DNA of 63,185 nt, the filler included, from Lenisia limosa (taxonomy: Eukaryota > Protista > Breviatea), in assembly GCA_001655205.1 (NCBI GenBank). It is 16 parts of 16 records of this genome, joined end to end, with 100 filler letters (N's around TTAATTAATTAA, not from the genome) between each part and the next. Parts side by side here need not be neighbours in the genome. Positions count along the whole stretch, not along the records: positions 1 to 10,101 come from LPNZ01004253.1; 15 more parts are not named here. One strand, 5' to 3'. The translations under genes were made by a program, and so were the position numbers. This document shows, in pieces, positions 1 through 10,101 of the stretch (its first letter is position 1; each line of letters starts with the position of its first letter). Under the pieces are notes generated by a model. That model saw only the letters and a list, made by a program, of their open reading frames with translations, was not told the origin of the DNA and did not search any database.

Positions 1-170
1 GTATTGTATAGTATATAGTATAGTATAGTATATAGTATTGTATTGTATAGTATAGTATATAGTATAGTATTGTATAGTATAGTATATAGTATAGTATAGA
101 GTATAGTATTGTATAGAGTATAGTATTGTAAATGGTATATAATATATGATATATAATATATGGTATATAG
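1..170. repeat. (TATAG/TATTG)n low-complexity microsatellite at the contig 1 left end
   Basis: Continuous gtatagtatatagtattg units; no coding signal. Confidence 0.85.
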
Positions 171-251
171 TACAGATAAAACTTGTTGAAGTTTACAAAA
201 ACCTTAACACAATCTCCAAGTCTGAAGAGAGGGGGGTGAAGGAACTTTGTT

Positions 252-700
252 ATGTGCACCAAAATACTAAAGTTGGTGGCATTGGTGGCAGTGGCAGGTG
301 GCAGNNNNNNNNNNNNNNNNNNNNNNNNNNNNNNNNNNNNNNNNNNNNNNNNNNNNNNNNNNNNNNNNNNNNNNNNNNNNNNNNNNNNNNNNNNNNNNNN
401 NNNNNNNNNNNNNNNNNNNNNNNNNNNNNNNNNNNNNNNNNNNNNNNNNNNNNNNNNNNNNNNNNNNNNNNNNNNNNNNNNNNNNNNNNNNNNNNNNNNN
501 NNNNNNNNNNNNNNNNNNNNNNNNNNNNNNNNNNNNNNNNNNNNNNNNNNNNNNNNNNNNNNNNNNNNNNNNNNNGTGGCAGTGGCAGGTGGCAGAGAAG
601 TCATGACGTCATCAGATTTATCCATGAAGTAGTGACGAGAAGTTCGAAAAATCGCTAAGTACAAATAATGTGCACCAAAAAACTAAAGTTGGTGGCAGTG
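252..700. repeat. Direct repeat ATGTGCACCAAAA(T/A)ACTAAAGTTGGTGGCA plus a GGTGGCAGTGGCAG minisatellite around an N gap
   Basis: The same ~30-bp motif starts at about 252 and 669; GTGGCAG units flank the N run 305-575. Confidence 0.6.
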
Positions 701-953
701 ATATGGGGATGGGTTTAGAGTACCCTGAAACAGTAAATATTTAATCTTCTTGTAATTAATGGAAACTGTTGGTAGTTATTAGGGTGAAACTGAAGAAAGG
801 GAAGCCCACAGCAAAATCCGTTACTAGCCTACTCTAGGCGATGGTAGCTGCAATGTTTTAGTTGGTAGCTGGCGTACTGGCTCTGTCGGGCTTGGTTGAG
901 GAATCTAAACAATGAGTGGGAAAAAGTGGAAAGAGGAAGTGTTGACAAGGATG

Positions 954-3900
954 TTACTGGCCTACTGTGGGTTCATCTGGGTCGTTGTCGTGGTGTAGTT
1001 GGTTGGCTAACTTCATGAAGGCGACCTGAGTGGCCGGTGTCGAAGATGGACGCTGCTGCTTTTTTTTCTTCGGTTTCTCGGCGGCCTTGTCCGTTACCTT
1101 CTTGGCAGCCTTCTTAGCGGCCTTCTTGGCTGCCTTGTCGCTGGCCTTCTCGTTGGCCTTCTTGGCGGCCATCTCGTTGGCCTTCTTGGCGGCCATCTCG
1201 TTGGCCTTCTTGGCGGCCATCTCGTTAGCCTTCTTGGCGGTCATATCGTTAGCCTTCTTGGCGGCCATCTCGTTGGCCTTCTTGGCGGCCTTCGCTGCCT
1301 TTTTCTTGGCAGTATTCTTGGCTGCGCGGAGGAGACTTTCTTTTCGCGCTTCTTGTTGGGCGGCGGTTTGGTTGGCGCGGTTGGCGGCGGCAGCGGCTGC
1401 TGGCCTATTTATGCGTTCGACTTGGGCGGCGTGAGAGGCGGCGGACTTGGTTGCCTTTACCCGCTTGGCGGTTTCGTCGGCGGAAAGTTGTCTAGCCATT
1501 TTATCGGCAGCGGCAGTAAGCTGAATGCGTGTCTTAGCGGCATCGGACTTGAGGTGTACACGCTTGGGCGACTTTGCCGGCGGGGGTTTGCTTGGGGCCT
1601 GGCGTTTGGCGGGACGACCCTGTTGGCTAGAGGGGATAAGAAGGTCCTTCTCTTTGTCTTCGTCTTCTTCTTCTTCTTCTTCTTCTTCTTCTTCTTCTTC
1701 TTCTTCTTCTTCTTCTTCACCGAAGGCTTGTTCTTCTTCTTCTTCTTCTTCCAAGTCGATGGACAGATTGGAGTCGTGTTCACGGTCCATGAGGTTAAGC
1801 TTCGGTGCAACCGCGGCGGCCTTGGTGTCCATAACGTAGTGGATGGTGCCGCTTTTCGGCTGCGCGTCTTTTAGAGGGTCCAGCACCTCGACAACCTTGT
1901 ACACTGTGTTGTTGAGAAGTACGCGGCTGTTCAAAGGCAAGCCTTCTGCAAGGGTGCTGAAGTGGTAGCAGCTAAGTTGCTCCGGGGAGAGGATGGCGAG
2001 GTCGTCGTCGGTGGCGGCGGCGGATTTTGGCTGCGTGGAGAGATCTGGCGACGGCGACCGGCGTTTTTGTCGCTTGCCGGTGGTCTTGGCGGCCTTGGCG
2101 GTGGCGGCGGAGGCAAGGTATTCCTCCTCCGAACCTGTGAGGCTGGCGTTGTCGTCGGCTTCGTTGCTAGCGGATAACGCAAAAGCCGACTCGGCAAGAG
2201 GGGTAATTCCCTGCGCGACGTCATTGCGGCCGTACTCTGCCCAGCCGGGAGGTGGCAGTGGGCCTTCTCGGCCTAGGAGGTAGTTGGCGTACTCCTTAGT
2301 CGGGCTTCCGTCGCCGGCAAAAATTGCGTGGACCGTGATGTGGCCGAGGTTGGCGATGAGGCCGTCGCAGAACAGTGGAACGACGAGGGATATGTCACCT
2401 CGATGGCGAGTCGTAGGGCAACCACCGTCGTGGCATGAAAACACGTCGGCGTTAATCTGGAGGATCGCCTCCTGGCGGCCGTTGTCGGAGCGGCGACGCG
2501 GTCCTTGCAGCACAATGTTCCGAAGGACGTTGTGTTGAACGCAAATGCGTGAGTTGGCGGCGTCAGTTATAGCCGTCCGTGTAGCACCAGCCGCCAATCC
2601 GGCAGACATCATCGGACGGCCGTACCTGGCAAAGGTAACCACCGTGGAGGAGTCGTCCGTGTTGGCTTCCAGCATGCCTTTGGCGTCCATGGCGAAGGCG
2701 AGGGCGTGGAGGCCGAGGGCGGCTTCTAGGGGGGAATTCCAGGCAGGAGCGTAGTCCTGGTCGGAAACGTCGTAGTGGGAGAAGTCGTGGTCAGACGGTA
2801 GGCGGGGAGGGGCGGCTGTGAAGGCCCACGGAAGGCTGTCGGAGTTGAAATGGAAGTTGTCCGGCAGTTCCAACCGGGGCAGGGAGAAGATATTGACAGT
2901 GTCCTGGGGTTTGTCGGACCAGCCTCGGCAGGCAGCGTCAAACCAACGGCTGACGACGCCCTTGCTGCGTTTCAAATCGTGGCGGCGAATTGCCATCCAG
3001 AACCTTGTAAGATTGACGGCAGCTGCGTCGACGAGGCGGGNNNNNNNNNNNNNNNNNNNNNNNNNNNNNNNNNNNNNNNNNNNNNNNNNNNNNNNNNNNN
3101 GTCGACCAGAAGACGGCGTCCCAGTCCATGACCAAAGGGTCACTGTCGGCCTGCTTGCCTGTCGGCTTCTTGTACACGTCCATGCAGGTGGCGGTGGCGG
3201 CGGTAATAACGGAGTTGAACAGGGCTTGGGCGGCAGTCTGGGGTGTCCACGACCCTGATATCGCCGGGAAGTTGAGGGCTCCAGTGTTCCAGCCGAGGGG
3301 GTTGCCGACGGCGGCGGTAAGCAGGACCTGGGACTGGTTGTTGCTGACAGCGAGGCTGTTGACAATGGCCTTAACGACGGCAGTGGCGTGTTCTCGTTCG
3401 TTCACTAGGAGTTCGTGGAAGAAGGACAGCAGGTCCTTGGGGAGGGACGACTTGGCACCGGCGAAGGGAGCGATCGCAGCGATGGCGGCAACGACGGCGG
3501 GAGTGAGGACGGCGACGTTGGAGGCGTAGCGGCCTTCTGCCTTAATAAGAACAGTCGCGTACGCCATCGCCACCAGGCAACTTGTTTTGGTTACCACCAC
3601 CTTGCGGTCGACAAGGCCTTGAAGGAACTCGTCGTGTAGGTCGGCGTTGTAGGCCGGGCTGGCGCGAAGCAGACCTGGCACCGCGTCAGGGCAGATAAAG
3701 ATTCGGTCGTCGTATAGGAGGTTCGTGTACTGAGCCCGGCCCCATCGCCGCTTCAGCGAGCCAGACCAAACCGCCGGCGTTTGGTTGGCAATCTTGCCGC
3801 ATTCCCGAAGCCAACGGCCGAGGAAGCTTCCAGGTAAGCTGCTGCAGTCTTCATTGCGCAGCCTCTTCGAGGCCAGTGCGACGGCGCATGGTGATCGCGG

Positions 3901-4810
3901 CGTCAATACGGTTCCGTTCGAAATGGCAGCCAGGAGGGCGGTGCGCGTCACTCCCTTGGGCCTCTTGGTGGTGTCGTCACTGCGGGAGGCCCTCTCACGG
4001 TAGGAGACACTTAGCGCCTTAGCTTCTTCAGCGGTGTCGGTTGCGTACGTCGCGACGTTAACCTTGAAGGCCTGTCGTTCTTTAATAGACAGGCCTGTCA
4101 GATACGGGAACATGGAGTTGATACTGTCGCGATGAACCTCCGCCACCTGCTCGTCGCTGAAGTAGCCGGCTGCAATGAGGAGGAGGTATGTAATATGCTG
4201 GCCGTTGAGGATGCCCACACGCTTGTGTAGAAGGCCGTCATGTGTGATGTCGAGGTCGTCGGCGTCGTCATGTGGCCGCCTGATCACGCCAAGGGCAATG
4301 TCGGGCGTACGTCGTGATGACCCACCAATAAGACGTACTGCCCTCACTAGGCTGAACTCCCGGTGGTTTACCAGGGCCGTGACCCCACTGGTCCAAGCCC
4401 TGTGCAAGTCACTGATTGTGACCGGGCCAGTCATTCCGACAGCACCTGTCACTTCCGCCTGCGGGTCGTTACCGGCCTCCGCCGTTCTCAGGTCTGTTCG
4501 CCCGGTGAATGTGGCCGCCGCCCCGTTGTTGTCAATGTTGATAATCACAGCGCCTCCAAGGTCGGGGTCTTCATGTACCGCTGAGTCGTCATGTGTCGTC
4601 AACATCAGCTTAGTTGTTAAGGCCGCTGCCGACAGCTCTTCTTCGACAACCTCCGGCACCTGGCTGTCGGCGTCTTCAATCACACTCTTCCACAACTGCA
4701 CATCGGCCTCGCTAGGTTCGCCGACCGCTACCTACACCAGCGTAAGAGATAACCCACCAACACAAACAAAACGGTACACCTCAGATTTGTTGCAAACAGT
4801 CGCTTACCAT
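954..4810 (-). CDS. Large unknown protein (~1260 aa) with an acidic tract and a histone-H1-like Lys/Ala-rich C-terminus; possible Bro-N-like DNA-binding segments
   Basis: Track ORFs 2938-4701 and 954-3365 are best read as one gene, broken by the N gap 3041-3100 whose length shifts the frame. The ATG at 4810-4808 is followed by a GTAAGC...TAG intron (4807-4732) and an in-frame exon from 4731 (VAVGEPSEADVQLWK...). There is a poly-Glu tract and (AKKANEMA)n repeats. Probable extra 3' exons lie at 904-833 and 765-715, via GTAGGC donors at 965 and 832. Confidence 0.7.
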
Positions 4811-4869
4811 AGTAGAATTCCGTTGTCAACCGCGATTGCTACTTGACGCGATCGTGGCTGAGATGCTGG

Positions 4870-5290
4870 ACGACAATCTCGCCTAAAGAGGTAAGCACCA
4901 AAGTTGGGGAAGGAAATAATTGAGGGCTACCTCCGCGGATTCCGCGGAGGTTTTAAAATTTCCAAAAAAAACGAAAAGACTGTCAAGTGCTTACAGGGTC
5001 TTGGCTGTGAAGTTGCTTGCAGTTGCCTGATACTGAACGACAATCTCACCTAAAGAGGTAAGCACCAAAGTTGGGGAAGGAAATAATTGAGGGCCACCTC
5101 CGCGGATTCCGCGGAGGTTTTAAAATTTCCAAAAAAAACGAAAAGACTGTCAAGTGCTTACAGGATCTTGGCGGTGAAGTTGCTTGCAGTTGCCTGATAC
5201 TGAACGACAATCTCACCTAAAGAGGTAAGCAACAAAGTTGGGGAAGGAAATAATTGAGGGCCACCTCCGCGGATTCCGCGGAGGTTTTTT
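4870..5290 (-). repeat. 167-bp tandem repeat = 55-nt micro-exon + 112-nt intron containing a 23-bp palindrome
   Basis: ACCTCCGCGGA-T-TCCGCGGAGGT occurs at 4929-4951, 5096-5118 and 5263-5285 (period 167). On the minus strand each unit has CTTTAG| exon |GTAAGC (exons 5216-5162 and 5049-4995). Confidence 0.9.
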
Positions 5291-5645
5291 TTTTTTTGTG
5301 GAAAATAAAAAAAAACTTCACGAGTGAACACATACCTTGGAACACACGAAGTCGTAAAAAGGGGGGTGATAATTGTTTTTTTTTTTTTAAATAGTNNNNN
5401 NNNNNNNNNNNNNNNNNNNNNNNNNNNNNNNNNNNNNNNNNNNNNNNNNNNNNNNNNNNNNNNNNNNNNNNNNNNNNNNNNNNNNNNNNNNNNNNNNNNN
5501 NNNNNNNNNNNNNNNNNNNNNNNNNNNNNNNNNNNNNNNNNNNNNNNNNNNNNNNNNNNNNNNNNNNNNNNNNNNNNNNNNNNNNNNNNNNNNNNNNNNN
5601 NNNNNNNNNNNNNNNNNNNNNNNNNNNNNNNNNNNNNNNNNNNNN

Positions 5646-5766
5646 AGCCGACGGCCCTTTTTTAGCCGATGGCCGACTCCGCGGAGGTGACCTGAACCAT
5701 TGTGTGGTTGGCTACAAACAAAAGGGCCGTCGGCTATCACGCCCTGAACTGAACTGAACTGAACTG
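5646..5766. other. Central hairpin (perfect 16-bp inverted repeat) followed by (GAACT)n
   Basis: AGCCGACGGCCCTTTT (5646-5661) is the reverse complement of AAAAGGGCCGTCGGCT (5720-5735). The loop contains a half-site CTCCGCGGAGGT. CTGAA repeats run from about 5745 to 5766. Confidence 0.8.
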
Positions 5767-5844
5767 GTGTCACCCAATTAACTATTTAAGCTTCTATTTT
5801 TGAAAAAAATATCATCAAAATAGCACGGCTCCTCAAGAACCAAG

Positions 5845-6105
5845 GTATGCTCGGCTTCCGTTTTCGTTATTGTTTCCGCGTAGGTGGCCCTCATATCTTT
5901 TTCCATCTTTGTTGCTTACCTCTTCAGGCGACATTGTCCTTCAGCAACAAGCAACTGCAAGCAACCATAGCCAAGACCACTGTAAGCACTGACAGTCTTT
6001 TCGTTTTTTTTTTTGGAATTTTGAAACCTCCGCGGAATCCGCGGAGGTGGCCCTCATATCTTTTTCCATCTTTGTTGCTTACCTCTTCAGGCGACATTGT
6101 CCTTC
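5845..6105 (+). repeat. Inverted, diverged copy of the leader repeat (163-bp period; 54-nt micro-exon + 109-nt intron with palindrome)
   Basis: TTCAG|GCGACATTGTCC occurs at 5927 and 6090. The exon 5928-5981 is followed by GTAAGC. The palindrome ACCTCCGCGGA-A-TCCGCGGAGGT is at 6026-6048. It is homologous to the reverse complement of 4870-5290. Confidence 0.85.
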
Positions 6106-6180
6106 GACTATAGTGCTAACGGTGTCCCTCCTAAGGGTGTGACTGAAACCTTTGTGAGTTTTTAACTGGTCCACGCTGCG

Positions 6181-9100
6181 ATGCAAGCTAATGACAATGT
6201 GGAGGAGGTTTGTTGGGGTGCTGGATCCTTTTAACTGCTGCAGCCGGTTGTGGCTTAAGTGTGATTTGTATGACTGAGACTTATGTTGTGTAGGTCACTG
6301 TCAAGATCCGTGTGGAGGAAGGCGGAGAAATTAGAATCCTTCCAGCCCTCAGGGATCTAATGGTTGCGCTTGACCTTCGTGTGACACAAGCAGGGTACGT
6401 AGTTCGCCAAGTGAGCAAGGACTGTGTGCCAAGCGACGTTGTTACCCGGCAAGGTGACCCAATACACATTACTGAGTTTGCACTACTGGTGCGAACGAGT
6501 CCAACTATCGTTCCAGAGCTGGAAAGCATCTTTCGGCGTGTATGTGAGGGATTAAGAAGTCTTTTTGTTTTCTGTAGTTGTTTTTCTCTTCTTTGACAAT
6601 TTGATTGTTTGTTTTGTTCCCGTTAACCTGTGTTTAGTCTCCAAGTATCCTAGAGAAGGACCTACCAACCTTCGTCGCTGGTGACGACGATCTCTATATT
6701 GAAGTACGGACCGACCTAGTACGGTTTTATGACGTTGACTACAGCTTTCAAGTTCAGGGTCCCGTGCCGACAGATTTTACTACAATGCCTGCCAGGCGTT
6801 ATCATACCCGGTATCCGGCTACGGAAGAGGAGGCCGCCGTCTTTGCGTCCAGATACCCGAGGCATGCCGGCCTCGAGGTACGACAACCCCAGACCAGTGC
6901 CCTCGACCATGTCTTGTCGACTCAGGGCTTGGTCGGAGCCGGGGCAGAAGATGTGTCAGTCATACTTGGCTTTGCGATGACACCATACGACGTCCGCCTG
7001 CAGCTCGCCGAGGATTCTGGAAACCGAAGCTACGCAGCGACTGGAATCGTGTATATCTATGGCGTGGCAGGCAGTGGGAAGAGTTTGCTGTTCAACCTTG
7101 TGGTTAGCGGTGTGTCGGATGAGGCGGTGGCCACTTTCCCTGGGGCGGACCGTAACTTCCCGCTAAGTGAGCTTTACGACGCACAGCATGGGCTGATTTA
7201 CCTCGCCAACAGCGATCTCAGTTCAGACCCGTCCGTTCACGCCGGACTCGACGTCGTTAAGAAGCTCGTTTTGAGCGAAGCCGTCTCGGTGGCCAAGAAG
7301 AACCGCCATTCCAAACGAGTAACCAATAAGAAGTTCTCGCTCCTGTTAACCGCCAACTTTCGAATGCCAGCGACTCCGACCGACCGTGACGCCACCGACC
7401 GTCGTCTTATCGTTATTCCCTTCCACACGAAGATCAATCCAGCCCACCTTGACGCAACCGTGGAGGGATGCCTCCAGCGCTGTGCTGGCGACGTGTTTGT
7501 GCACTGCGTGCGCGCGTATCACACCCGCATGGCCATGTACGAGGCTGGTGGCGTTGCCAGCCCCAACTGGGCCCATCACCTCTCATCCGATCACACCGCC
7601 GCCAGCAATAGCACAAATGCCGCCCTCGCGGACCTGGTACACGTCGCTAACGGAACAACAATGACGGTCAAGCGCCGAGCCGCCCTAGTGCGCGGTGTGT
7701 GTGCCATTAATCTTGATGAGGCAGCGCCATGCCTCAGTCGCGCCGCCGTGGTCAACGCGGTCACGTCTACCGTCTCCGAGGCCCGCGTCGGTGACAACGA
7801 CAATCCTGGTGACGGCGACCTCATCCGTGCGATTCCTACCGACCTTGCCTCGAAGTTTCGCCTAACGAGCGACGTCCTCAATGAAGCCTTCCGTCCTTAT
7901 CCAGTGGAACGTCTTAGTGTTCGGCGCAACAACTGTAGACGACTTCGCCTGCAGGTGGTTGACGACCCTGTTGCGGGACTCAAGCGCAGCCTCGCAGACC
8001 TTGCTGCCGACCTTGACGAGGACGACGACGGACGTCAGGAGGGCGCTGAAGGCATTCGGCCAGCCGCCTTTGTGCCCGGGCCTCAACCCGACGTCTTCCG
8101 GGCCACTGTGTCCAGGGAGAAGCTCGCCAACCTGATCCGCCGAGTCCGTATTTCTCATGTAGATACGGAAGGCAACCCAGTTGACGCCCCTTCCCCTGTA
8201 GCAGGTCGCCCCCGCCGTCGACCCTCCGGTCGTGGCACTATTAATGCGCCCATCGATATTGTCGACGAAAATTTGGACTATGGTAACTTGTCGCCCATGC
8301 ACAGTCCGCAGCTGAGACCATGTCTACCACTGGAGGAAGTGGGTGACCTCGACCTTCTTGAGTTCGCTGCCGAAGGCCCCCAAGTTCCAGAAGTTCCTGT
8401 TGAAGGCCCGCAAGTTCCAGAAGTTCCCGATGAAGGCCCGCAAGTTCCCGAAGACCACGTTGAAGGCCCGCAAGTTCCCGAAGTTCCCGTTGAAGGCCCC
8501 CTAGTTCCAGAAGTTCCTCGTGTTGCCGCCCCGCGCCCAGTCAAGGTCAACCGTCCTTCGATGCCGCCCCAACGAACGGTATCTACTAAAGATCGCCCCA
8601 GCCCTGAGTTCCCGTCGCCAAACTCCTTCCCGCGGACAGTCTACTTTGGAAAAGAACCAAACTTACAGAAGTTCCTCAAGCGTCCCAGGTTCGAGCCCGG
8701 AATATCCAGAACCGGGATAGTTGAGGGCGTGTATAAGCCCTTCAGAGGCCCAGCAAACTATATCGTGAAGTATGCTCAGCTCGACGACGGCCGCCGTCTA
8801 CTTGACAGTGAGGGAATTATGGCCCGTATGCCGACATGCCCTTCTTGCAGCTGGACGTTATCACCTCGCCCTTTCCGTGACTTCCCCAATTGGCACTGTG
8901 TCTACTGTCACGGGTCACCTAAGGTCAACTTCCCTGACTGGCCTGTCCTCACAGGCGACAACGATCCTGATTGCTCAGACACTCCAGCGATTAAAGACCA
9001 GCTCAGCCTTGCTCAGAAGTTCCTCCGTAGTATGGAGCTACGACTTGCGGGCCTTAGGGCGATCCAGTACCACTGGAGGGCCGTAACGCCTGGTACCGTA

Positions 9101-9784
9101 CCAAACGCCGCCCGCATGGCCGCAGCTGCTGTAGGTTTCTACTGCTTGATGTATACACTCTATATTTATACATCCATATTGTATTATACGTTGTGATAAA
9201 TTTGTTTATTTTCAATGATTTTTCAAGGCCGCCGCCGTCAAGCAGGACACTGTACAGCCCCGCCTGCCTCTACCAAACCTCGACATTCCTCCGAGTCCAA
9301 CTGACACGCTTGTAAGCGTACTTGGTGTTTTTATGTTTTTTTGATGGTGTCTCACTGTCGTGTTGATCCTTGTTCAGAGGTCACTCAGTCCCGAAATTTC
9401 GCCCTTTTCGTCACCAGTTGATAATGAAACAACACCACCGCTCACGGAATTAAATTCGGTATGTCTTTCATGATGTATTGGTCTGGTCTCCTTTATATGC
9501 TGAATGGTTTAGTCTCCTTTATATGCTGAACTCTCTTTGATGACTTCTTTTCAGACCGACAACGATCGTCGCCGGAATGTGGCGGTTACCCCTACTGCCC
9601 TTTGTGTATGCAAGGTCGAAACCTTACAAAGCATTCTCTTTTGTTTTGTGCCTTTTTCGCCACGGCTAATTTTTTTCAGTTTGACAGTGACAGTAACAGT
9701 GACGACGACTTTAACTCCCCGGTGTCCGTTTCACAGTGCAGCCAACGGAAGATCCCGAATTCTGCCGTCTCCGCTGAGTTTTAG
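6181..9784 (+). CDS. D5/P4-family SF3 (AAA+) DNA helicase-like protein, ~1030 aa, with a C-terminal C4 zinc ribbon; no primase domain visible
   Basis: Walker A IYIYGVAGSGKS (7061-7084), a divergent Walker B LIYLANSD, motif C FSLLLTAN (about 7340-7357) and arginine finger DRRLIVIPF (7397-7423) occur in the D5/P4 order and spacing. CPSC-x16-CVYC lies at 8837-8908. Inferred exons are 6181-6207, 6294-6539, 6638-9130, 9228-9311, 9378-9458, 9555-9605 and 9680-9784, all joined in frame by GT-AG introns. The start codon is uncertain (6181 or 6360). Confidence 0.8.
8372..8521 (+). repeat. Five 30-bp coding repeats (EGPQVPEVPV)
   Basis: GAAGGCCC recurs at 8372, 8402, 8432, 8462 and 8492 within the helicase ORF. 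Confidence 0.9.
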
Positions 9785-10101
9785 CTATGTTTACTATATT
9801 ATGAATTTCTTATACCTCTACCGGCATGGTCTCACACAGCTTGATGGCCATATGTGGATTACTATTTCCTCAAAGCTGTTATTTCAGTGCTTTTAACAAC
9901 TTGGGATATAGATCCACAGGTGTTAGAGAGAGTTTGCAGTGGTTTACAAGAGAGCGCGACCTGGAAGAACAAGGTTTACCACTAGATCATGTTTGAAAAT
10001 ACCTGATTCCAGCCCTATCTAAACACCCTGCCAGGCAATTAAAAGGCATTTCAGACTTTTTATTTTTACTTTACTGGCTTCCTACCCCCTTTTGAAGGCG
10101 A

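Follow-up and report, generated by a model that had tools for sequence, protein, structure and literature searches.

We analysed a 63,185-nucleotide stretch of DNA from the protist Lenisia limosa (the window, along which all positions are counted) and focus on a two-gene element lying within positions 1–10,101. The two genes read away from each other. On the minus strand lies an orphan gene of ~1,230 amino acids, with its main coding exon at 954–4731; on the plus strand lies a gene for a helicase of superfamily 3 (SF3) with a D5/P4-type core, whose coding exons occupy 6294–6539 and 6638–9196 (intron 6540–6637), with further small exons to ~9770. Coding blocks are 55–62% GC, spacers are AT-rich with long homopolymer runs, and the introns are short and of the GTAAG/GTATG…YAG type. 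What we consider of interest is the region between the genes, a mirrored, predicted two-promoter region carrying dyads specific to each subfamily of the element, in which an exon-plus-intron repeat appears to be a lineage-specific by-product. We find several diverged versions of the element, some of them multi-copy, and all in one organism. Its relatives are contigs L001, L004, L005 and L006; L001 is a separate contig from a European Nucleotide Archive (ENA) assembly, evidently of the same organism as the window.

Mirrored leaders with palindromes in predicted introns

Tandem Repeats Finder reports a 167-bp unit repeated 2.6 times at 4862–5288 with 97% matches, the units of this left array being 96–99% alike, and inverted 163-bp copies of the left unit lie at 5875–6105. 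The mirrored 163–167-bp repeat described in a first-pass annotation of this DNA, with its coordinates, is thus exact to the base. A search for inverted repeats, in line with the self-comparison proposed there, found inverted arms of 50–73 nt that are 80–93% complementary (4864–5287 versus 5875–6105), together with a 68-nt direct repeat (5875–5942/6038–6105, 99%). Between the two arms, introns are 85–86% identical and micro-exons 79–82%, and a 33-nt block around a palindrome is 100% identical. This perfect 23-bp palindrome, ACCTCCGCGGAWTCCGCGGAGGT (form ACCTCCGCGGA(T/A)TCCGCGGAGGT), occurs four times, starting at 4929, 5096, 5263 and 6026, in the introns where it had been noticed before; half-sites are found at 5875–5885 and 5677–5688. 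None of 200 dinucleotide-preserving shuffles contained a match, even with three mismatches allowed.

On the minus strand, the predicted left leader array (4883–5335) is delimited by the 167-bp repeat period and by splice signals like those of the coding introns. It would consist of two 112-nt introns (4883–4994 and 5050–5161), a first intron of 119 nt (5217–5335) and two 55-nt micro-exons (4995–5049 and 5162–5216), with one palindrome per intron (4929–4951, 5096–5118 and 5263–5285). The last leader exon (4808–4882, 75 nt) has its first ~20 nt in common with the micro-exons and ends exactly on the ATG at 4810–4808, as previously remarked, an arrangement that recurs in L004; a 76-nt intron follows directly after the start codon (4732–4807, GTAAGCG…CTCTTAC…GTGTAG). 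On the plus strand, the first exon (5790–5844) ends CCAAG at 5844, and with a start placed ~30 nt past the TATA box it would measure ~30–35 nt. The right leader array (5845–6090), recognised from its repeats and splice signals, would have introns at 5845–5927 (83 nt, with the half palindrome 5875–5885) and 5982–6090 (109 nt, with the palindrome 6026–6048) and a single micro-exon of 54 nt (5928–5981), so that two micro-exons on the left and one on the right, of 54–55 nt, are recovered as first described. The next exon (6091–6207) contains the likely helicase start, ATG 6181, and a proposed 5′ splice site at 6207|6208 (intron 6208–6293).

The junction CCAAG|GTATG, within CCAAGGTATG, stands at both inner ends (5331–5340 on the minus and 5840–5849 on the plus strand), with exon ends at 5336 and 5844 as originally assigned. 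The proximal left promoter module (5336–5395, minus strand) consists of TATTTAA at 5393–5387 and a short first exon ending CCAAG at 5336; the right-hand TATTTAA lies at 5783–5789. The distance from TATA box to exon end is 58 nt in the proximal left module and 54–62 nt in six modules from the window, L001 and L004. The centre (5646–5789), probably untranscribed to judge from its repeats and the right-hand TATTTAA, carries a 16-nt perfect inverted repeat (5646–5661/5720–5735) built of GCCGACGG iterons, the palindrome half-site at 5677–5688 and (CTGAA)4.6 at 5744–5766.

An assembly gap of 250 N (5396–5645) interrupts this region. L001 is 99.1% identical to the window over 5067–5395 and 100% over 5646–10101, and because it runs across the gap the two sides are continuous. 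The equivalent stretch (L001 330–639) sets the true length at ~310 bp rather than 250; since it is non-coding, no reading frame is at stake. Hidden in it are (CTGAA)-type repeats, four iterons of GCCGACGG plus a T-run at 21–25 bp spacing, one more palindrome (the fifth) and, as a distal tandem duplicate, another left TATA/first-exon module. Could the whole structure be an artefact of mis-joined or collapsed short-read repeats around the gap? The gap does lie mid-structure, and L001 ends inside the left array, where its unit beside the first intron differs at three positions, each identical to the window's other unit. As this unit mixes the window's variants, the number and order of left-array units are not firm in these short-read assemblies. 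Yet L001, an independent contig that crosses the gap, matches the right arm and the following 4.4 kb at 100% identity, and the same mirrored design is present, gap-free, in the diverged L004. An artefact is very improbable and largely refuted: of the earlier concern about mis-assembly, the design has stood the check and only the exact unit count remains.

All proposed introns begin with GTAAGC/GTATG and close with YAG, and CTTAC stands ~10 nt ahead of the 3′ end. The leader-intron signals GTAAGC/CTTAC/YAG are those of the coding introns, whose positions are backed by protein homology across stop-containing spacers; for one coding intron this homology holds on both sides and in both elements (IFRR|SPSILEKDL in the window, ILRK|TQRTLDADL in L004). 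The leader exons are ATG-free except for the terminal ATG 4810–4808, whereas the first introns contain ATGs. The conserved N-terminus of the orphan protein (VAVGEPSEADVQLW…) has no ATG of its own in the window, its open reading frame (ORF) being bounded by the TAG within the 3′ splice site; joined to the ATG-ending exon it would read MVAVGEPSEAD…, equivalent to MVMIGDPSAAD… in L004, which has the same ATG|GT exon end at 5230–5232 and the same exon start. Promoter geometry, shared signals, ATG-free leaders and the conserved ATG-ending exon together make splicing plausible for the leaders, and they look non-coding, as first supposed. We rejected coding micro-exons: the left ones, at 55 nt, are not a multiple of three, and there is no ATG in any of them.

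On the right side, homology with L004 reaches past ATG 6360 upstream to the exon start at 6294, so the helicase more likely starts at ATG 6181, with the 5′ splice site 6207|6208. ATG 6181 is the first ATG of the predicted spliced right leader, and its product (MQANDNVEEVTVKIRV…) aligns with MDDTAIKVTV… in L004; on this homology the intron 6154–6293 of the first-pass annotation is less likely than 6208–6293. Note that with intron 6154–6293 no stop codon interrupts the frame between 5825 and the helicase coding sequence, across the first exon, the 54-nt micro-exon and exon 6091–6153; this stretch has no ATG. Non-AUG initiation within 5825–6539 (plus strand) is possible, but ATG 6181 with the other 5′ splice site fits the L004 homology better.

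Covariation of the dyad in sister elements

L004 (9.4 kb) carries the same divergent pair, with a helicase 34% identical to that of the window and an orphan protein 59–63% identical; the architecture pointed out at first, two unrelated genes with an inverted, duplicated leader, is therefore not only seen in the window but kept in a diverged relative. The centre of L004 shows the design of the window in cleaner form: each of its 233-nt inverted arms, which are 94% complementary, contains (CTGAA)n and a TATA box, and CCAAG|GTATG follows 57 nt after the box. Six iterons of GTCCGTCGGCT plus an A-run (GCCGACGG-type), spaced 21–23 bp, stand opposite two or three.

The 23-bp motif of the window is missing from L004, L005 and L006. 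In its place L004 has eight 23-bp palindromes, ACCTCTGGGGCWGCCCCAGAGGT (form ACCTCTGGGGC(A/T)GCCCCAGAGGT), with length and the outer five bases ACCTC…GAGGT unchanged. The two palindromes differ at positions 6, 8 and 11 and at the mirror partners 18, 16 and 13, that is, by three compensatory pairs found in every copy, and because the inner changes are paired, perfect dyad symmetry is kept. The L004 palindromes form 44-bp tandem repeats inside a single first intron per side, and palindromes also lie at 4565–4660, between both TATA boxes and outside either inferred transcript. L004 has no repeated micro-exon. The exon-plus-intron repeat stressed in the first-pass annotation is thus present in the window but is not the conserved unit. 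In L006, a third and more distant subfamily (26% identical), another dyad, TGAGGG-N7-CCCTCA, is present five times between A/T runs, directly upstream of a 3′ splice site that precedes the ATG exon.

The contigs also differ in abundance. In one SPAdes assembly, k-mer coverage is 500 for L001, 25 for L004, 148 for L005 and 24.6 for L006, from which we estimate that the subfamilies differ ~20-fold in copy number. Beyond the element, L006 runs on into ~6 kb of DNA with 40% GC and without recognisable genes (no Pfam match among its ORFs), which is presumably host background.

The micro-exon shares two short collinear matches, of 9 and 8 nt, with the second leader exon of L004; these were equalled by 56 and 187 of 2000 shuffles, respectively, and homology between the two exons is suggestive only. 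We dropped the idea that the micro-exon came from a tandem duplication whose breakpoints lay in exons 1 and 2, the similarity not rising above shuffled controls.

A scan of IMG/VR for the palindrome gave no match. In the Joint Genome Institute (JGI) metagenomes the exact 23-mer occurs in two GC-rich bacterial contigs, L002 (2280–2302) and L003 (220–242), as an intergenic hairpin between two ORFs, after a gene resembling the acetolactate-synthase small subunit. We rejected these contigs as relatives and regard both as chance matches, a coincidence which means that the 23-mer alone does not identify the element. An Rfam scan of all loci gave no match.

The palindromes as candidate sites for a dimeric protein

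We propose, with a probability of about one half, that 4808–6207 and the ~310 bp in the gap together form a two-way control region shared by the two genes of a nuclear DNA element, that the palindromes are sites for a dimeric protein and that the micro-exons are a by-product. Two TATA-type promoters would stand back to back in the centre, each followed by a first exon of ~25–35 nt ending CCAAG|GTATG, one serving the D5/P4-type SF3 helicase gene and the other the orphan gene, with phased iterons of GCCGACGG plus an A/T tract and (CTGAA)n repeats between them. The working parts would be the 23-bp dyads, ACCTC-N6-N-N6′-GAGGT, present in several copies on both sides and mostly in leader introns. 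Most likely, a dimeric protein particular to each subfamily would bind them as double-stranded DNA and so regulate divergent transcription and, possibly, also replication or maintenance. The 167/163-bp exon-plus-intron repeat would then be this subfamily's way of multiplying sites: given their intronic position, a duplication across the exon border would be viable only where the copies keep their splice signals and bring in no upstream ATG, and the by-product would be ATG-free micro-exons, passengers that leave translation undisturbed.

Several observations argue for this proposal. Because L004 keeps palindromes without repeated micro-exons, it is the palindromes that look to be under selection, and the micro-exons look like a tolerated by-product; conservation of the mirrored leader design in L004 suggests that the design itself is functional. 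A role at the DNA level is argued from the L004 palindromes lying outside the inferred transcripts. Binding of a dimer to the duplex is favoured by this same position, by symmetry that is perfect to a single central base and by covariation between subfamilies, and double-stranded-DNA sites are further favoured by the adjacent A/T tracts and phased iterons and by a replication-type helicase next door. The idea of protein-binding palindromes, already raised in the first-pass annotation, is plausible on these grounds, the outer ACCTC…GAGGT having been retained alongside the three compensatory changes.

Other points weigh against the proposal. The start sites and every leader intron are predictions. 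A dyad with compensatory changes is equally expected for an RNA or DNA hairpin. Neither protein has a recognised DNA-binding domain, and a host factor is a possible binder instead of an element-encoded one. AlphaFold models reach a predicted local distance difference test (pLDDT) score of ~31 for the N-terminal 760 amino acids of the orphan protein and 30.9 for the helicase core (from a two-sequence alignment), so that no fold search was justified with either. The number of left-array units is not secure. Finally, L006 looks integrated, and any autonomous replication of the element is conjectural.

The main rival is an RNA-level device, the splicing-dependent control of the first-pass annotation, in which the leader introns act as tight hairpins that gate splicing and co-regulate both genes post-transcriptionally. 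The unit introns fold to −33.5 and −29.3 kcal/mol (z = −4.25 and −3.64), none of 200 shuffles being as stable, in contrast to two coding introns of the same genes (z = 0.75 and −0.38). The 5′ splice site (GUAAGCAC) pairs with the branch region (GUGCUUAC), which adds to the palindrome fold, and the compensatory change between subfamilies fits a conserved stem. However, a low z-score is trivially expected from a 23-bp palindrome, and the terminal stem, which is absent from the first introns, is largely automatic, because the CTTAC branch motif and GTAAG are reverse complements of each other. Moreover, an RNA loop needs at least 3 nt, whereas symmetry perfect to one central base suits a protein dimer, and the L004 palindromes between the TATA boxes would not be transcribed. 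We consider such a device rather unlikely.

The palindromes might also act as ordinary enhancers bound by transcription factors of the host; the element would then borrow host regulation, and the sites would take no part in replication or maintenance. Repeated sites near two promoters, element proteins without a detectable DNA-binding domain and a motif resembling the cAMP response element (CRE-like TGACGTCA) that also occurs in the flanks are in line with this explanation, and the window octamer TCCGCGGA, which equals the yeast Pdr1/Pdr3 zinc-cluster element, would make a zinc-cluster factor a candidate. Three subfamilies in the same host nevertheless each have their own dyad, with length and outer bases kept, and because each has its own sequence, co-evolution with a subfamily-specific partner is suggested instead. 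A purely host-factor enhancer is unlikely. Like an assembly artefact and the terminal junction discussed below, it is a less likely explanation than double-stranded-DNA sites for a dimeric, subfamily-specific protein.

By analogy, the nearest functional counterparts would be found in small DNA viruses and episomes, whose control regions have origin palindromes, repeat enhancers and divergent genes, an SF3 helicase gene among them, but the element is not a member of those families. As in polyoma- and papillomavirus control regions, which lie between divergent early and late genes, a compact region of perfect palindromes beside A/T tracts, tandem repeats and two divergent promoters has an SF3 helicase gene pointing away from it, and the mRNAs (here by prediction) have spliced non-coding leaders. 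Late mRNAs of mouse polyomavirus contain tandem copies of a short non-coding leader exon. Unlike in these viruses, the helicase belongs to the D5/P4 clade and not to the large-T/E1 type, the cassette measures ~9–10 kb, and the leader repeats are already present in the DNA and do not arise from leader-to-leader splicing. The PDB gave no match to solved large-T or E1 chains, and Pfam detected no capsid domain in the orphan protein. As to function, the closest parallel to the 23-bp sites is given by those of Epstein–Barr virus (EBV) oriP/EBNA1 and of papillomavirus E2 (ACCGN4CGGT), which likewise are many replicon-specific short dyads near promoters and a putative origin; in contrast to these, no EBNA1- or E2-like protein was detected, and the sites lie in leader introns on both sides. 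Iteron plasmid origins resemble the centre in that GCCGACGG repeats stand between A/T tracts at 21–25 bp (about two helical turns), in opposite orientation across the centre, but the setting here is eukaryotic and nuclear, no iteron-type Rep is present and the role of the iterons is putative.

The helicase core links the element to the D5/P4 primase-helicases of giant viruses, polinton-like viruses, virophages and phage satellites, through matches to DUF5906 and the PHROG "DNA primase" families over the stretch with Walker A, motif C and the arginine finger. It differs from them by the lack of a preceding primase domain and by the presence of spliceosomal introns, and the element has no recognised capsid, packaging ATPase or polymerase. 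A polinton-like virus or virophage was rejected: there are two genes in ~9 kb versus 14–40 kb, no domain of a double jelly-roll capsid, penton or packaging ATPase, and no relative in IMG/VR. A highly diverged capsid is possible, the structure models having a pLDDT of ~31. With introners and introns derived from miniature inverted-repeat transposable elements (MITEs), the leader introns share shortness, dyad-symmetric content, terminal complementarity and their own splice signals; unlike those, they are local tandem duplicates in one control region and not insertions scattered over unrelated genes, with no target-site duplications seen. As to introner-type dispersal, the motif is absent from L004, L005, L006 and IMG/VR, with only the two chance bacterial matches in the JGI metagenomes.

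A literature search for comparable architectures returned nothing relevant, and among ~15 billion predicted proteins the element family has no relatives outside the one organism. A further possibility, which we rate as less likely than not, is that the element belongs to an undescribed kind of eukaryotic nuclear replicon or virus-like element, with two intron-bearing genes for a primase-less D5-type helicase and an orphan protein. The dyads in the leader introns would then serve as sites for origin, partition and operator functions, and amplification of these intronic sites would determine copy number and expression. Whatever its nature (plasmid, virus relic or new transposon type), it would extend the catalogue of eukaryotic mobile DNA with SF3 helicases. 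If the dyads are indeed sites for a subfamily-specific protein, a single genome would here contain at least two, perhaps three, pairings of a cis-acting DNA site with its presumed binding protein, each pair having diverged jointly to a specificity of its own, and the element would be a compact natural example of such divergence. It would also illustrate how amplification of a regulatory site, dragging splice signals along, is a simple route to new non-coding exons.

The two genes and the flanks of the element

The main coding exon of the orphan gene was assembled from two minus-strand ORFs, 2938–4701 and 954–3365. A second N gap (3041–3100) lies inside the gene; the alignment with P0002 runs through it and shows only ~6 codons missing, so the two ORFs are one gene, and the 60 N are too many. 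Since the gap length was estimated, the apparent frame shift between the ORFs is an artefact. No Pfam domain was found in the protein. An exhaustive HMMER search of 1.8 billion representatives gave five matches, three of them credible (P0002, P0003 and P0004, all from one and the same assembly) and two marginal. A query with the 587-aa ORF had come back blank, the true protein of ~1,230 aa being beyond the length window, and the 803-aa ORF retrieved P0002. The C-terminal part (1075–1290 and 1657–1751) contains a 24-nt repeat in 7.6 copies, with AAKKANEM/KKANEMAA-type Lys/Ala units, and a long Glu run, encoded by TCT ×31 as read on the plus strand; a histone-H1-like basic tail thus lies beside an acidic tract, and a Glu run is also present in L004.

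The helicase has more than 900 amino acids and a D5/P4-type SF3 core with the Walker A motif GVAGSGKS. The full DUF5906 model of Pfam (1–114) matches with E = 1.5e-4 and 22.8 bits, under the 27.6-bit cut-off. Among PHROG families, phrog_7601 (E = 1.5e-9), the "DNA primase" phrog_1156 (E = 8.8e-8) and phrog_1829 (E = 1.2e-5) match, the DNA-primase families aligning over their helicase part. Profile comparison with the D5/P4 (DUF5906) clade covers Walker A, Walker B, motif C and the arginine-finger core; GVAGSGKS, LLLTAN and DRRLIVIPF are kept in the L004 helicase, and so is the intron position. No primase domain precedes the core. PDB sequence searches with single sequence and profile gave no match, and a search of IMG/VR with the helicase alignment gave no relative. 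The right-hand ORF has a single database relative, P0001, on L001, and the relatives of both genes in the searched databases come only from the same assembly.

Two further features of the helicase gene are worth recording. An in-frame 30-bp repeat in 4.9 copies (8372–8517; L001 3355–3570) encodes EGPQVPEVPV-type decapeptides, whose copy number differs between the 810-aa ORF of the window and the 820 aa of P0001 on L001, the two being otherwise 100% identical. At 8700–8800 a Cys-rich segment, CPxCxWTLxPRP…NWxCxxC (residues ~733–758 of 6638–9193), is common to both helicases and has a weak zinc-ribbon match in Pfam; it could be a zinc-binding, possibly DNA-binding, module.

At the outer borders, a ~156-bp repeat (AAAGGCATTTCAGAC…) is found at 10037–10101 in the window, 5090–5586 in L001 and 9395–9453 in L004. 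It abuts the 3′ flank of the window element and of L004 at the same base, with 98% identity, after the helicase gene in the window and after the orphan gene in L004, the gene pair being flipped relative to the flank. Three readings of this repeat are conceivable: a preferred target for insertion, a backbone that both elements share, or a terminal repeat that has been homogenised.

Another explanation of the mirrored arrays is that they are sub-terminal terminal-inverted-repeat (TIR) arrays at the joined ends of a circular or head-to-tail copy, with the genes reading inward from the termini. Inverted arms with internal tandem repeats do resemble sub-terminal arrays, the flank repeat meets both elements at one base despite the flipped gene pair, the contigs end in repeats and one subfamily is at high coverage. 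Against this, no transposase, integrase or polymerase domain was found, the outward-facing TATA modules are central and of fixed geometry in six instances, the outer flanks have no long inverted repeat, and L004 and L006 are at single-copy coverage, with L006 running into host-like DNA. We judge a terminal structure improbable, and the sub-terminal TIR array considered in the first-pass annotation is not borne out. A TIR transposon proper was rejected for similar reasons: the inverted arrays lie between gene 5′ ends that read outward, no inverted repeat of at least 16 nt connects the outer flanks, and no part of either protein matches a Pfam transposase or integrase.

The outer flanks (window 285–304 and 576–615; L004 1–215 and 9058–9080) contain short TGGCAG-type repeats and CRE-like TGACGTCA in tandem units. 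The opposite flank has reverse-oriented CTGCCA(C/G), a possible short terminal inverted motif that is too short for significance. At its left edge (1–172), the window begins with an AT-rich satellite (~18% GC) of GTATA/GTATAGTATAGTATATA units, in contrast to the 60% GC of the genes.

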